The position numbers and the translations under genes are program-made. A stretch of DNA of 64,000 nucleotides from the sequence record NC_017972.1. The stretch is one strand, 5' to 3'. Under the pieces are notes generated by a model. The model saw only the letters and a list, made by a program, of their open reading frames with translations. It did not search any database and was not told the origin of the DNA. Positions 4,044-40,992 of the stretch are shown piece by piece. Numbering within the stretch: position 1 is the first letter of the stretch; every line of letters starts with the position of its first letter.

Positions 4044-4352
4044 TTAATTTGCCTCCACGGCTGTTCTGTTCCACTGGCTTGCGTTGCGAATCAATACGTC
4101 GTCAATCTCGCCGCGAGAATCCAAATCCAAAGTTTCCGAACGCCCGTGGCAATTAGGATCGCCGCTGACTTCGCAGAAACCTGCGCTAACCACATTCAGC
4201 GTTGGCTTGATATCGCCGCCTGTACGATCCATTGCGCGAATCGTCATTTGCGACATTACATCGTGGTTGATGCACTTTGGAAAAATGATCGGCAGTTCGT
4301 GAATCACGCCGGTCTGATAATCGCGTCCTTGCATAACAATGTACTTCATCAT
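4044..4352 (-). CDS. small protein with Janus/PHPT1-like motif pattern (copy 1)
   Basis: KYIV...IIFPKCINHD...VVSAGFC...CHGRSETL...SR..ID pattern shared with 11270 and 39043; fold assignment is inference. Confidence 0.6.
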   Translation of the reverse strand: MMKYIVMQGRDYQTGVIHELPIIFPKCINHDVMSQMTIRAMDRTGGDIKPTLNVVSAGFCEVSGDPNCHGRSETLDLDSRGEIDDVLIRNASQWNRTAVEAN

Positions 4353-11269: not shown

Positions 11270-11584
11270 TTATTCGGATTGTTGGATCAGTTGGCGTTCC
11301 TCGGTGGAAAGCTTTTCAGCGATTTCTTCCAGCGGATGCGCGCCAGTTTCTTCGGCTTCGATGTGGTCGGCCATACGTAGCAGGATTTCGTCTTTCAGGC
11401 CCCGGCTGCCGTACTCGACGCCGCCGATGGTTTGTGTGTGCTGGCAGGAAATAAACATGCTCTGCACAACGCCCACGCCAGCGGCTTTGATCGGCCACGG
11501 GAATTGCACTTGATCAAGATCGACCGCGTGCCCGAAAATCATTGGTACTTCTTTGCCATCGATTTCAACAACTACGTATTTCAT
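11270..11584 (-). CDS. degenerate Janus/PHPT1-like protein (copy 2)
   Basis: MKYVV...MIF...IKAAG.G...C...SRG..DE pattern; the putative catalytic His is not aligned. Confidence 0.5.
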   Translation of the reverse strand: MKYVVVEIDGKEVPMIFGHAVDLDQVQFPWPIKAAGVGVVQSMFISCQHTQTIGGVEYGSRGLKDEILLRMADHIEAEETGAHPLEEIAEKLSTEERQLIQQSE

Positions 11585-11823
11585 CAGTGCTTGCTCCCCG
11601 AGACTACATGCTCGAACATGTCCACGATTTCATCGTAGGAAATTTGAACTTCGTTGCGCTCAATGGTGAACGCGGTTTCTGTTGCGGTTGCCACGATTTC
11701 AAACGAACCGGACAGCTCACGCGGCACAGCAACTACGTAGTAATCGCCGTGCTTCTGAATGTCGGTTGCCCTTACGCCCGCAAAGTCGGACATGGAATGT
11801 GAAGCGTATATACGAGTGACCAT
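11584..11823 (-). CDS. hypothetical protein (79 aa)
   Basis: ORF track 11584..11877; GGAG precedes ATG 11823. Confidence 0.65.
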   Translation of the reverse strand: MVTRIYASHSMSDFAGVRATDIQKHGDYYVVAVPRELSGSFEIVATATETAFTIERNEVQISYDEIVDMFEHVVSGSKH

Positions 11824-36289: not shown

Positions 36290-36874
36290 TTACTCATTTA
36301 CAGATTTGAGATTTTTCGTGTAGTGGTATTCAACCAGACTCATATCGTCATCCGGCTTCATACCCTTCAAATTACGCGCATAGCCGTAACGCTCCAACGC
36401 TGCGCGCAATACTTCATTGCCGACCAGCTCAACGTGCAACCCAACAAAACCCATTTCTTTTGCTACCGTTTCGAGGTGGCGCAGGAAGGCGCGGAAATGG
36501 CCTTTGCCTCGTTGCTTGTAAGCGGTGGAAACGTTGGCGATGGTTACGCCCGGTTCCCATTCGTGCAGCGCATGGTTGAACGTGGGACCGGCGCGCAGGT
36601 AAACGCGCAATTCGCCACAGAGGAATTCAACCGAACGCGGGAATTTGGAATCAACTTGACGCACCAGAAATGCGGCAATGTTTGAAAAATCGGTGAGAAA
36701 ATCCTGCTTTCGTTTCAGGTCCATGTTTTTGTAGTCTGTCGAGAAGCCGTGCTCATGTTCGCGGGTGTCCATCCTCTGCCTCAACTTCTTGTTTTTACTT
36801 GTACCTTGTGGAGAGGCGGGAGGTTTTAATTCCCGCCTCGGTTTTATTACTTGGCGAACAGTTGCACGCCGCAA
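36290..36874 (-). CDS. GNAT-fold acetyltransferase
   Basis: IANV....KQRGKGHF (motif A), VELVGNEVLRAALERYGY (motif B). Confidence 0.75.
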   Translation of the reverse strand: MRRATVRQVIKPRRELKPPASPQGTSKNKKLRQRMDTREHEHGFSTDYKNMDLKRKQDFLTDFSNIAAFLVRQVDSKFPRSVEFLCGELRVYLRAGPTFNHALHEWEPGVTIANVSTAYKQRGKGHFRAFLRHLETVAKEMGFVGLHVELVGNEVLRAALERYGYARNLKGMKPDDDMSLVEYHYTKNLKSVNE

Positions 36875-37765: not shown

Positions 37766-37795
37766 ATTATACCCGTGCTAGGGCCTCCCGGTCAA
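37766..37795 (-). promoter_or_regulatory. sigma70-type promoter TTGACC-N18-TATAAT
   Basis: Perfect -10; -35 overlaps the TGA stop of the upstream gene; followed by GGCGGC. Confidence 0.72.
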
Positions 37796-38685
37796 GCTTG
37801 GGGTGCCTGCTCGCGGTGGTCTACTGCGCCCGGTCCGCGCCCCTCAATGGGCCACGTCTCTAACGGGGTGCCATCGCCGTATACCGCATGACGCAAGCGC
37901 TCATACAAACCCAAATGAACGGCGTGTACCCGTTCCATTAGGTAGCGTTTGTTTTTGAACGTTGGTTGCACACGCGAACCCAAGAACGTGTTAAGCGTGT
38001 AATTGGTTGGCGCTTTATCACCAAAGAACGCCCAGCGGTAAGTTTCGTGAATATGCCGAACGTGTTCATCTTCAATCTGGCCGTGTTGCTCAACCGCGTT
38101 GAAGAAATCCATAACGTTCATGAACGGGAAATACTTGGCGTTCCGGCACGGATAGAATTCCGCACCTTCGGCAATGTGCAGCAGCTGGCGACCGATGAAA
38201 ACGTAGCGGAACATCTGCTTGCGGTATTTCGCCAGCAATTCGGGATCGTCTTTCGCGTGCTCCATTTTCTGCAAACGCTGTATCGTGTTGCCGATACACG
38301 ACCGCAGGATTTCCCGCGAATCGTAGCAGGTATCGAACAGCTCGACCAGATCGTTACGGATTTCTTCGGAACCCCACGCCAGCGGCGAATGCAGGTTTTC
38401 GTAAGCTGCAAAAGACGACTTGGAAATCAGCTGCAAGAACCGCTCAATCGTGCAGAACTGGAATTCAAAATCTTGCCCAGTGACCAAACATTTGATCTTG
38501 CGGCGTTTCGAGCCACGCGGGAAGTGCATGAAACTCAGCTCGCGATCAAAGCCGACCATTGCGATATCGAAGTCGGAATCAGGGCGGTTAGTGCCCCATG
38601 CGCGGCTACCAACGTTCGACACAAGAATCGGTTTTACTTTCAGGGCGTGCTCTGCCCAAGAATACGGCAAATCAGGCAGGATCAT
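37792..38685 (-). CDS. Pol-beta superfamily nucleotidyltransferase (RlaP/PF10127-like)
   Basis: GSRAWGTNRPDSDFD; L..KSS..AYE.L.SP. Confidence 0.85.
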   Translation of the reverse strand: MILPDLPYSWAEHALKVKPILVSNVGSRAWGTNRPDSDFDIAMVGFDRELSFMHFPRGSKRRKIKCLVTGQDFEFQFCTIERFLQLISKSSFAAYENLHSPLAWGSEEIRNDLVELFDTCYDSREILRSCIGNTIQRLQKMEHAKDDPELLAKYRKQMFRYVFIGRQLLHIAEGAEFYPCRNAKYFPFMNVMDFFNAVEQHGQIEDEHVRHIHETYRWAFFGDKAPTNYTLNTFLGSRVQPTFKNKRYLMERVHAVHLGLYERLRHAVYGDGTPLETWPIEGRGPGAVDHREQAPQA

Positions 38686-39040
38686 TTTCGTTCTCAGGCT
38701 TTGCCATAGTCAGCGTGATTGTTGGTGGGTTATTTTTGATTGCTTCGTAAACCGCGCCTTGCTCCAGAATGCTAACGCGTTTGCCTTTGTAGGATTTCGC
38801 GTTGCCCTTGTCGTCAACCACGAACACAGCCGACGCCACATGCGTGTAGGAATTCGGCGGCACTTCGCATTCGATTTGCAGACCGATGAAACCACGCACA
38901 CGAAACGCATTACCGATCAGATGGTCAATGTATTTGTGAATTTGCGCAGGCTGGATTACCTTGCGCGATTCTTCCGCCGCCTTTTCGGCAACGATGCGCA
39001 ATGCGGCTGGCGCCGGGTAAAGCAGGATGAACTTTTGCAT
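38672..39040 (-). CDS. hypothetical protein (122 aa)
   Basis: ORF track. Confidence 0.7.
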   Translation of the reverse strand: MQKFILLYPAPAALRIVAEKAAEESRKVIQPAQIHKYIDHLIGNAFRVRGFIGLQIECEVPPNSYTHVASAVFVVDDKGNAKSYKGKRVSILEQGAVYEAIKNNPPTITLTMAKPENENDPA

Positions 39041-39042
39041 TT

Positions 39043-39900
39043 TTAATCGTCCCCTTCGTCGCTGTCGTCGTCTACGTCAAACTCGAAACGTTTAGCCAGA
39101 TCGGCAACCGAACCCTTCATTACCTGCACCACGGAATCGGATGCAGAGCCACGGAAAGAAAGTTGCATTTCTTCGTGGTCATCAGTGAGCGGCCACGGGT
39201 CATCTAGGCGCACAATGCGTCCGCGTTGGTCATTGTCCAGAAACACGGTTTCATTTTTGGCAATTGCTTCGGCGAAACGATCAATGCGGGTCGAACGCTC
39301 AAACACGACTTTCATTGCGCTAGGCAGGAACTGATAAACCTCGTCGTAGTCGCCAGCCTCGTAGTCGGTGTGCGCCGGTTGGTTTTCACTCAAATGGAAC
39401 AGATGCACAGCACGCGCCGCGTAACCAAACGACGGGCCGCGATAGACCAGCCGCGTACCGGCGTCGAGATAGCGCATTTCGTTGCGGCCATTCAACACTT
39501 CGATATCGCTGGTGATGATGAATTCTTTTTCCTGCATTTGCTTCACTTGCTGATAGCAGGAATGCTCGAAGTTATGCAGGACCGAGGAAATCAAATCGAA
39601 ACCAGAATACGGCGGCGATTTGATATTGAGGTTGGTGGATTCCAGCACGGCTTCGTCAGCTGCGCCGCGTGTGCTGATGCCCAGCGTATCCGACGTACCA
39701 AAGCAGGAAAAACCGAGCAGGCCAGTGGTGCAGAAACCGGCGCCGACTACCGTAACTTTTTCTACTGGAATGTCGTACATTTCAGCCATGCGTTTCTTGG
39801 CGTCTTCCGCAACGTCTGCGTGAACAAACATTTCATGGAAGGTCATACCCAGTTCAAAAAGCATTTCGTTTTTCTGAGCTTGCAGCGTGATGTATTTCAT
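39043..39900 (-). CDS. Janus/PHPT1-like N-terminal domain fused to an unknown domain (copy 3)
   Basis: MKYI...VHADV...VVGAGFC...CFGTSDTLG. Confidence 0.6.
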   Translation of the reverse strand: MKYITLQAQKNEMLFELGMTFHEMFVHADVAEDAKKRMAEMYDIPVEKVTVVGAGFCTTGLLGFSCFGTSDTLGISTRGAADEAVLESTNLNIKSPPYSGFDLISSVLHNFEHSCYQQVKQMQEKEFIITSDIEVLNGRNEMRYLDAGTRLVYRGPSFGYAARAVHLFHLSENQPAHTDYEAGDYDEVYQFLPSAMKVVFERSTRIDRFAEAIAKNETVFLDNDQRGRIVRLDDPWPLTDDHEEMQLSFRGSASDSVVQVMKGSVADLAKRFEFDVDDDSDEGDD

Positions 39901-40217: not shown

Positions 40218-40432
40218 TTCTTCTCTTTCTCGAAAATGTAGGCGCCTAGCGGTCTGATAAAGAACGGCAGCGGGATCACGATGATCAGCACAAGCTGCAC
40301 GAACTCTACCGCCAGTTTGTATTCACTAAAACCAAAGTGAGCGATCAGGGCGATTACCGTGTAGATAACAGAACACCAGATTAGCCATCTTGCTTTGCGG
40401 CTAATTGGTGACGCTTTAGCGTCGTGTGTCAT
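40214..40432 (-). CDS. two-TM membrane protein
   Basis: Hydrophobicity pattern. Confidence 0.7.
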   Translation of the reverse strand: MTHDAKASPISRKARWLIWCSVIYTVIALIAHFGFSEYKLAVEFVQLVLIIVIPLPFFIRPLGAYIFEKEKK

Positions 40433-40992
40433 ATTTTGCCCTCACGTTTAGCGCGTCTGTATGACTCAAGGAACTGGCGTTTTCTGTAGCGCCGAACATC
40501 CTTGAACAAACGGCCAAAAGTCACCGACGTGTAATCGCCTTCGACATACGAAACGCCTGTGCGTTCGGCAGCAGCTTTCATGTCGGCGGGGCCGAAACCA
40601 GTGTCGGGAACATACACAAAGTTTTTGGCAAAGAATTGTTGCGAACCTTCCCAGCCAACTTCGCCGGTAATTACCCGGTCGCCTTGCCCACCAGCAGTAC
40701 GCAAAGCGCGCAGCATTTTTGTAGCAATGCCTTGGCGACGATGCTCGGGCTTCACGTAAAATTCTGCGTGCCCTTTGTTGACGTAGAAAACCAGAACGCC
40801 AATCGCGTCGGTGTCACGCTGGTTTTCGTAGGCGACGATCAGCATCACTTTCTGTTTGCGGTACGTGCCTACGCTTGCCAGCTCGGGCCACACGTAACGC
40901 AAGTTGCCAATCTTTTCGTACAGGTTTTGGTGGCACAGAAAAGAAGCGGCGTGGCGGACTGATTCTGGCGATGTGTGCAGGAGAAAAATCAT
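40429..40992 (-). CDS. GNAT-fold acetyltransferase
   Basis: FYVKPEHRRQGIATKML motif A. Confidence 0.82.
   Translation of the reverse strand: MIFLLHTSPESVRHAASFLCHQNLYEKIGNLRYVWPELASVGTYRKQKVMLIVAYENQRDTDAIGVLVFYVNKGHAEFYVKPEHRRQGIATKMLRALRTAGGQGDRVITGEVGWEGSQQFFAKNFVYVPDTGFGPADMKAAAERTGVSYVEGDYTSVTFGRLFKDVRRYRKRQFLESYRRAKREGKI

Follow-up and report, generated by a model that had tools for sequence, protein, structure and literature searches.

A putative phosphohistidine hydrolase domain with PHPT1-like features in gp339 of Pseudomonas jumbo phage Lu11 and its family in phages and prophages

The protein gp339 of Pseudomonas phage Lu11 (LU11_gp339, YP_006382869.1) most probably carries, at its N-terminus, a domain with the fold and the key residues of PHPT1, the eukaryotic phosphohistidine phosphatase. 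The gene lies in a stretch of 64,000 nucleotides (the window) of sequence record NC_017972.1, which is part of the genome of this 280.5-kb jumbo phage of P. putida (DNA identity 100%). Two independent lines, matches of relatives to the Pfam family of PHPT1 and a structural match of the predicted model to human PHPT1, make the fold assignment moderately well supported though not decisive. On balance, we favour reading gp339 as a minimal Janus N-terminal domain (N-domain) that works as a PHPT1-like phosphoramidate (phosphohistidine, pHis) hydrolase and is joined to a C-terminal domain (C-domain) for target selection or regulation; the chances that the N-domain itself is a phosphoramidate or pHis hydrolase, a putative activity read from conserved residues, seem to us about even. 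What is new here is a probable Janus domain of minimal size that phages encode, whose residue set departs from that of PHPT1 and which is joined to a novel domain.

Domain architecture of gp339

The gp339 open reading frame (ORF) is intact, from an ATG start to a TAA stop, and encodes a cytoplasmic, strongly acidic two-domain phage protein (isoelectric point, pI, 4.6; net charge about -23) whose existing label is 'hypothetical protein'. It sits within a long, tightly packed minus-strand gene array, its start overlapping the stop of gp340 (ATGA). The original prediction, made from the sequence alone, had picked out four motifs as PHPT1-like, and all of them are present in gp339 with the order and spacing claimed (KYI at residues 2-4, VHADV at 26-30, VVGAGFC at 51-57 and CFGTSDTLG at 66-74). 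We regard these motifs as beyond chance because they are the most conserved columns across a family alignment of 122 N-domain sequences. The same prediction of a fusion to a second domain is borne out by stand-alone relatives of 83-120 amino acids, which match residues 1-87 only, and by the AlphaFold model, in which a linker of lower confidence (93-99) parts the N-domain (residues 1-92) from a distinct C-domain (100-271). A PHROGs search matched phrog_3988 ('unknown function') across the full length of gp339, and searches of gp339 against NCBIfam and PADLOC gave nothing meaningful.

The C-domain has the conserved motifs Y-x-G-P-S/T, V-H-L-F and D-P-W-P-L-T-D-D-H-D/E, and in an exhaustive HMMER search it was always fused to the N-domain and never found alone. 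Pfam gave no relatives for it, its profile returned only noise against the PDB, and Foldseek returned only low-probability matches. The possibility that it is a diverged duplicate of the N-domain was ruled out (hhalign probability 0.1%).

A probable PHPT1-like fold in the N-terminal domain

The sequence link to PHPT1 runs through relatives of gp339. Among 24,736 Pfam models scanned, PF05005 (Janus/Ocnus, PHPT1), which had been named as the candidate before the scan, was the family matched by most members when these were scanned singly (3 of 42 and 5 of 122). The stand-alone protein P0035 (104 amino acids) scored 24.7 bits against PF05005 (E = 2.6e-5), above the Pfam gathering score of 23 bits, with residues 2-82 aligned on positions 14-93 of the 108-position hidden Markov model (HMM); as P0035 is itself retrieved by the gp339 profile, gp339 is tied transitively to PF05005. 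Sub-threshold alignments were obtained for P0020 (residues 94-177 on HMM positions 3-89), P0053 (1-59 on 15-74) and P0077 (1-72 on 15-86). P0020 is 46% identical to P0035, and the other relatives found by the P0035 search are at most about 40% identical to it. In all four alignments, the Met1/Lys2 pair of the family falls on HMM positions 15/16, and such a single register is predicted by homology, unlike chance.

AlphaFold2 was run with the 122-sequence alignment on full gp339 and, separately, on residues 1-95. Mean predicted local distance difference test values were 91.3 for full gp339 and 93.4 for residues 1-95, the latter with a predicted template modelling score of 0.84. The N-domain is modelled as two strands (2-10 and 13-21), a helix (27-41), two further strands (49-60 and 63-67), a G68-x-S70 loop and a second helix (80-90). 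Foldseek searches with both models covered 350,542 PDB chains, of which the best 50 matches were examined per search; among these, human PHPT1 (2nmm_A) was the sole high-probability match spanning nearly the full domain. It aligned with the full gp339 model over 92 columns (probability 0.95, template modelling (TM) score 0.56 on PHPT1 length, root-mean-square deviation 3.4 Å) and with the N-domain model over 80 columns (probability 0.84, TM score 0.57 on query length, E = 0.67); across both searches, values ranged over 0.49-0.57 for TM score, 3.4-3.5 Å for deviation and 0.84-0.95 for probability. Taken with the strand count, the Pfam register suggests that the N-domain is a trimmed Janus/PHPT1 fold; it appears to lack the first strand of PHPT1.

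Conserved residues and the candidate active site

The catalytic site of PHPT1 comprises Lys21, His53, Ala54, Arg78, Ser94 and Ala96; the phosphate is contacted by the backbone NH groups of His53, Ala54 and Ala96 and by the Ser94 hydroxyl, and the loop of residues 29-39 is far from the site (PMC4817053). Acting as general base, His53 activates a water molecule that hydrolyses the substrate directly, with no phospho-enzyme intermediate formed; His102 is important for activity, and the enzyme dephosphorylates bacterial CheA in vitro (PMC11277029).

In the phage family, counted over columns of the 122-sequence alignment, His27 and Gly55 are invariant (122/122 each), and Lys2 (121/121), Gly68 and Ser70 (121/122 each), Arg78 (118/122) and Cys66 (116/122) follow closely. 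Columns conserved at 90% or more are K2, Y3, F21, A54, C66, G68, S70, L73, R78 and D82; E16, P18, P22, F56 and S77 are common. The gp339 sequence keeps K2, Y3, E16, F21, H27, A54, G55, F56, C66, G68, S70, L73, R78 and D82, and departs from the majority with G18, H22 and T77 in place of P18, P22 and S77. From order and spacing, we infer that His27 corresponds to PHPT1 His53, Lys2 to Lys21 and Ser70 to Ser94. His27 opens helix alpha1 in both AlphaFold models, and Ala28 follows it in 61 of the 122 members, as Ala54 follows His53 in PHPT1.

The His-to-Ser interval is 43 residues in the phage family versus 41 in PHPT1, and the Lys-to-His interval 25 versus 32; by motif and spacing, the PHPT1 Arg78 position falls on Phe56. 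The shorter Lys-to-His interval plausibly stems from the 11-residue loop 29-39 of PHPT1, where the model places a two-residue hairpin turn. The near-invariant family Arg78 stands eight residues past Ser70, an offset that leads to residue 102 in PHPT1 numbering, and may take over the part of PHPT1 Arg78.

Strength of the PHPT1 assignment

Several observations weigh against the assignment. No Pfam match was found for gp339, whole or split into domains, even at E ≤ 10, and a stand-alone paralogue in the window (Table 1) likewise had no PF05005 match; only about 4-5% of members align to the Ocnus HMM at all, and more than 95%, both Lu11 copies included, do not. The family profile, the P0035 sub-family profile and P0035 alone, searched against the PDB, did not reach the PHPT1 chains. 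Foldseek E values for 2nmm_A (0.67-0.8) were not significant, no PDB match reached E ≤ 0.001, PHPT1 entries other than 2nmm_A were absent from the 50 best matches of either search, and ribosomal protein LX/eL20 matched with similar E values over 53-63 columns, about half of the N-domain. Within the candidate site, spacing and the GGGR motif quoted for PHPT1 in the original prediction put Phe56 (Phe in 95 of 122, Glu in 14 of 122) where PHPT1 has Arg78, and no PHPT1 residue is named as the equivalent of the near-invariant Cys66, Asp82 and Glu16, which could point to a different chemistry.

The resemblance to PHPT1 originally proposed for the N-domain is thus supported by the PF05005 matches of relatives and by 2nmm_A as the sole near full-domain match, but the structural comparison offered as its check fell short of significance. 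Because gp339 lacks a Pfam match, the profiles miss PHPT1 in the PDB and the Foldseek E value is about 0.7, the two lines of support are not decisive. We nevertheless consider it likely that the N-domain truly belongs to the Janus/PHPT1 superfamily.

Proposed mechanism

Catalysis is plausible, since it is the residues that count in PHPT1 that the phage family keeps invariant. The N-domain chemistry would be PHPT1-like, that is, metal-independent hydrolysis of an N-P bond (for example, in phosphohistidine) without a phospho-enzyme intermediate. The invariant His27, which heads helix alpha1, would activate water, the phosphate would be held by the helix N-terminus, Ser70 and the G68-x-S70 loop, Lys2 would anchor the substrate and the family-specific Arg78 may stand in for PHPT1 Arg78. 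The C-domain, which occurs in fusions only, probably selects the target or regulates the enzyme. The early or accessory genomic places of family members, with a Mu-like early region and Pbunavirus 14-1 ORF14 as examples, speak for this reading.

Distribution of the family

A large uncharacterised family in phages and prophages of Proteobacteria is built on the N-domain as its founding module. Close relatives of gp339 are rare, the two closest being 87-92% identical. An alignment of gp339 and its close relatives yielded 38 matches in an exhaustive HMMER search of 1.84 billion representatives: about nine full-length gp339 relatives (269-285 amino acids), several fusions whose C-termini are different or further diverged (P0011, P0013, P0015, P0023, P0018 and P0020) and many of the stand-alone proteins described above. 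When phage genomes were searched with tblastn, jumbo phage HRDY3 proved to encode a homologue of full length (35% identity), and stand-alone forms came up in Xylella phage Sano, Stenotrophomonas phage Suzuki and Pbunaviruses. With a profile built from 42 N-domains, the family grew to at least 187 clusters (90% identity); every one is labelled 'hypothetical', and the sources are Pseudomonas phages together with genomes of Salmonella, Serratia and Klebsiella. The Pbunavirus form is 14-1 ORF14, present in 325 phage records, and three PHROG families cover the N-domain, all labelled 'unknown function'. The domain thus occurs as a stand-alone protein of about 95 amino acids in Pbunaviruses, Mu-like prophages and Sano-like and jumbo phages, and as fusions in Lu11-like jumbo phages; the family is acidic overall, with a median pI of 5.5. 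Fold matches of the N-domain in BFVD, a viral model library, were uncharacterised phage proteins only, including those of PaBG, Pbunaviruses, Stenotrophomonas phage AXL_3, Agrobacterium phage Atu_ph07 and Pantoea phage Vid5.

Lu11 holds both fused and free copies of the N-domain because the window also encodes the stand-alone paralogue, whose HMM alignment and translation retain MKYIV, ELPIIFP, the His, SAGF, C-x-G-x-SE-x-L and SRG-x-x-D; we take the unnamed BFVD entry I1TQS3 (102 amino acids) to be this protein, by its length and accession series. HRDY3 likewise has a fused and a free copy (P0062). A third, weak match to the family HMM was seen on the minus strand of the window at 11273-11629 (16.7 bits, E = 1.5e-4 among 608 ORFs), with no PHROG match; this ORF keeps MKYVV, P-x-IF, a possible H-A-x-D and SRG-x-x-D, lacks AGF and G-x-S, and may be a degenerate paralogue. 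Three members occur on one 205-kb metagenomic phage contig, L023 (650-892, 4001-4282 and 4285-4938), two of them adjacent and one of that pair C-terminally extended (218 amino acids).

Table 1 Features of the gp339 locus and related features of the window (positions within the 64,000-nucleotide stretch).
Feature	Position	Strand	Basis	Description
gp339 (LU11_gp339, YP_006382869.1)	39043..39900	-	ORF list and annotation	285 amino acids, acidic, two-domain
N-terminal domain, residues 1-92	39625..39900	-	AlphaFold2 models, Foldseek match to 2nmm_A, Pfam Ocnus matches of relatives	Probable minimal Janus/PHPT1-like fold
Lys2 codon	39895..39897	-	121/121	Starts the first strand; putative counterpart of PHPT1 Lys21
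His27 codon	39820..39822	-	122/122	Candidate general base; putative counterpart of PHPT1 His53
Ser70 codon	39691..39693	-	121/122	G68-x-S70 loop before helix alpha2; putative counterpart of PHPT1 Ser94
C-terminal domain, residues 100-271	39088..39603	-	AlphaFold	Long helix 100-123, then beta-rich module
Acidic tail, residues 272-285	39046..39087	-	AlphaFold, low confidence	Net charge -9
Stand-alone N-domain paralogue	4044..4352	-	Family HMM, 92.6 bits; ORF; phrog_3988	102 amino acids
gp338	38672..39040	-		122 amino acids, basic (pI 8.7); directly downstream of the fusion throughout the Lu11-like clade
gp337	37792..38685	-	PF10127, 34.2 bits against a cutoff of 23; synteny	RlaP-family Pol-beta nucleotidyltransferase

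Genomic context and alternative interpretations

Stand-alone members are found repeatedly among nucleotide-metabolism genes. In phage Sano, the member lies beside MazG, NADAR and P-loop kinase genes, with the kinase stop overlapping its start; another locus holds DNA polymerase A, a PurZ-like adenylosuccinate synthetase, a deoxyribosyltransferase and an HD hydrolase, again with a stop/start overlap; and at separate loci the neighbours are NT5C, QueC/PTPS/GTP cyclohydrolase I and NUDIX. This company of nucleotide enzymes suggests an alternative interpretation, in which the fold is Janus-like and the protein is not directed at other proteins: its pocket would bind or cleave a phosphate-bearing small molecule, such as a nucleotide, a nucleoside phosphoramidate or a nucleotide-type immune signal, and the protein would be a nucleotide-pool or counter-defence factor. 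The occurrence of the domain as a stand-alone early or accessory gene of about 95 amino acids in many unrelated phages fits this interpretation, as does the presence of paralogues within genomes (two or three in Lu11, three in L023), and no phage-encoded neighbour family was found to recur beside stand-alone members. We consider it unlikely, although it has some standing, because nucleotide genes generally abound in the early and middle regions of phages, which makes such adjacency weak evidence, because PADLOC gave no match, and because the invariant His/Lys/Ser pattern fits a hydrolase site equally well.

Some of these loci are worth describing in their own right. In Sano (locus L003, 1331-2806), the NADAR protein gp34, the AAA_33 kinase gp35 (with a weak cytidylyltransferase-like tail) and the stand-alone gp36 are tightly packed, the starts of gp35 and gp36 overlapping the ends of the preceding genes, and the run may be a nucleotide/NAD-related module. 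On contig L022 (1577-4300), P0124 directly follows a PurZ-like gene, a nucleoside deoxyribosyltransferase and an HD (YfbR-like) hydrolase, a gene set reminiscent of phages that modify DNA bases. At L015 (3830-5668), the Salmonella member P0064 comes past the transposase and right behind a MuB-like ATPase; two DUF2528 genes, Gam and GemA follow it, which places it among the early accessory genes of a Mu-like prophage.

The fused form has a different neighbour. gp337, two genes downstream of gp339, is the third member of a conserved trio (the fusion, a basic gp338-like protein of 116-130 amino acids and RlaP) shared by Lu11, HRDY3 and two metagenomic lineages; contig L006 stops short of the full trio and retains at least the gp338-like gene, the RlaP homologue in L009 scored 30.1 bits against PF10127, and the gp338 profile returned only noise against the PDB. 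RlaP adds one or two nucleoside monophosphates to the 3'-OH of damaged RNA and sits in RtcB RNA-repair operons (PMC12776372), and a link to RNA repair has been drawn for the RlaP of jumbo phages (PMC7824862). The fusion might therefore be an RNA-repair component that works with gp337 and gp338 on damaged tRNA ends, where it could remove a 3'-phosphate and let RlaP extend, or act on a ligase-nucleotide (N-P) intermediate. Its order being kept at 30-40% identity, the trio is consistent with such a role, and an RlaP nucleotidyltransferase lies two genes from the fusion of a different subtype, P0015, the only independent recurrence. Nevertheless, we hold the RNA-repair role to be quite improbable: many other neighbours are also syntenic over long range in the Lu11-like clade, so the adjacency may be inherited; neither an RNA ligase nor a polynucleotide kinase turned up between positions 36 and 43 kb of the window or in the flanks of the relatives examined; a net charge of -23 fits direct RNA binding poorly; and the stand-alone members lack an RNA-repair context.

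An unrelated small alpha/beta phage domain, whose likeness to PHPT1 is convergent or spurious, would account for the lack of any Foldseek match at E ≤ 0.001, for the negative profile searches against the PDB and for the many members that miss PF05005. We judge this very improbable, since a family named in advance came top of 24,736 Pfam models with four co-linear matches, one of them above threshold, since PHPT1 was independently the sole near full-domain structural match in 350,542 PDB chains, and since the conserved residues follow the order and spacing of the PHPT1 site residues. A TsaB/YeaZ-like (ASKHA) N-terminus that mimics the t6A-synthesis scaffold, suggested by a phmmer match of gp339 (residues 5-121) to Thermotoga TsaB in the PDB (E = 1.5e-4, VVGAGFCTTGLLGF aligned to VVGVGIGPGGLTGL), was rejected as chance local similarity, since other TsaB/YeaZ structures were not matched, the match was lost with the 42-sequence family profile, no TsaB/TsaD family model of Pfam or NCBIfam was matched, no TsaB was among the top 50 Foldseek matches of either AlphaFold model, and the alignment crosses the domain boundary of the AlphaFold model; it serves as a caution for single-sequence PDB matches.

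Under the preferred reading of the N-domain as a PHPT1-like hydrolase, the context of gp339 points to nucleotide and RNA metabolism, not signalling. Because RlaP adjoins the fusions and nucleotide-pool enzymes adjoin the stand-alone forms, a pHis enzyme or a nucleotidyl-enzyme intermediate of nucleotide or RNA metabolism, nucleoside diphosphate kinase (Ndk) being one example, is at least as likely a target as a sensor kinase or a protein of the phosphotransferase system (PTS). The neighbourhoods examined held nothing specific to two-component or PTS signalling, and the silencing of host signalling originally proposed is one of several possible roles that the context does not favour.

GNAT acetyltransferase genes were also seen near gp339 and its relatives: gp342 (40429-40992, minus strand) matches Acetyltransf_7 (E = 8e-9), an ORF at 36290-36874 (minus strand) gives a weak GNAT match, and GNAT genes flank relatives on contigs L009 and L013.

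Implications and comparison with known systems

Two-component signalling in bacteria, the PTS, nucleoside diphosphate kinase and several central enzymes are all driven by phosphohistidine. We found no characterised phage enzyme that removes phosphohistidine in the literature searched, the sole viral pHis phosphatase being a SixA-type prediction that was not validated; no paper linked PHPT1 or Ocnus to phages, and nothing relevant was found on 14-1 gp14. This agrees with the original prediction, which took the activity to be undescribed for phage proteins. A broader proposal, that widespread phage phosphoramidases of the PHPT1 type strip pHis from a conserved host enzyme or signalling protein (Ndk, PTS or a two-component kinase) during takeover, is tentative and, in our estimate, somewhat unlikely; such a family would span a core gene of Pbunaviruses, Salmonella Mu-like prophages and jumbo phages and, if the proposal is true, would be a new class of phage host-takeover effector. 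Pbunaviruses are studied for therapy of Pseudomonas aeruginosa infections. If the family is active, three PHROGs of 'unknown function' and the gene conserved in about 300 sequenced Pbunaviruses (14-1 ORF14) would gain a testable function, the PHPT1 fold would be extended to bacterial viruses, and small (about 95 amino acids), metal-independent pHis phosphatases would become available as tools for the technically difficult pHis field. Active members would be, as far as we know, the first functional members of the PHPT1 fold outside eukaryotes.

Among known systems, PHPT1 is the closest: it and the phage domain are small alpha/beta domains whose elements run in one order, and in each a His heads helix alpha1, a Lys begins the matching strand and a G-x-S loop leads up to helix alpha2. 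However, the phage domain is shorter, starting at HMM positions 14-15 of 108 with the first strand apparently absent, and has a tight hairpin in place of loop 29-39, Phe at the Arg78 position and an additional set of conserved residues (Cys66, Arg78, Asp82 and Glu16); it is also phage-encoded and, in Lu11, fused to a novel domain of 170 amino acids. SixA, the bacterial phosphohistidine phosphatase, targets ArcB, NPr and Ndk (PMC6282199, PMC7948535, PMC12934123) and resembles gp339 only in the proposed activity on bacterial pHis proteins, whereas its fold and mechanism are unrelated, and no histidine-phosphatase Pfam match was found for gp339 at E ≤ 1. With TsaB/YeaZ, the N-domain shares a local pattern of beta-hairpin, helix and strand and a G-rich strand-loop motif, but that fold is unsupported by the model searches and the match vanishes with the family profile. 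The end-healing phosphatases of the T4 Pnkp type, brought to mind by the RlaP neighbour, offer at most a functional analogy, as there is no relation in sequence or fold, gp339 is strongly acidic and no ligase or kinase partner was seen nearby.

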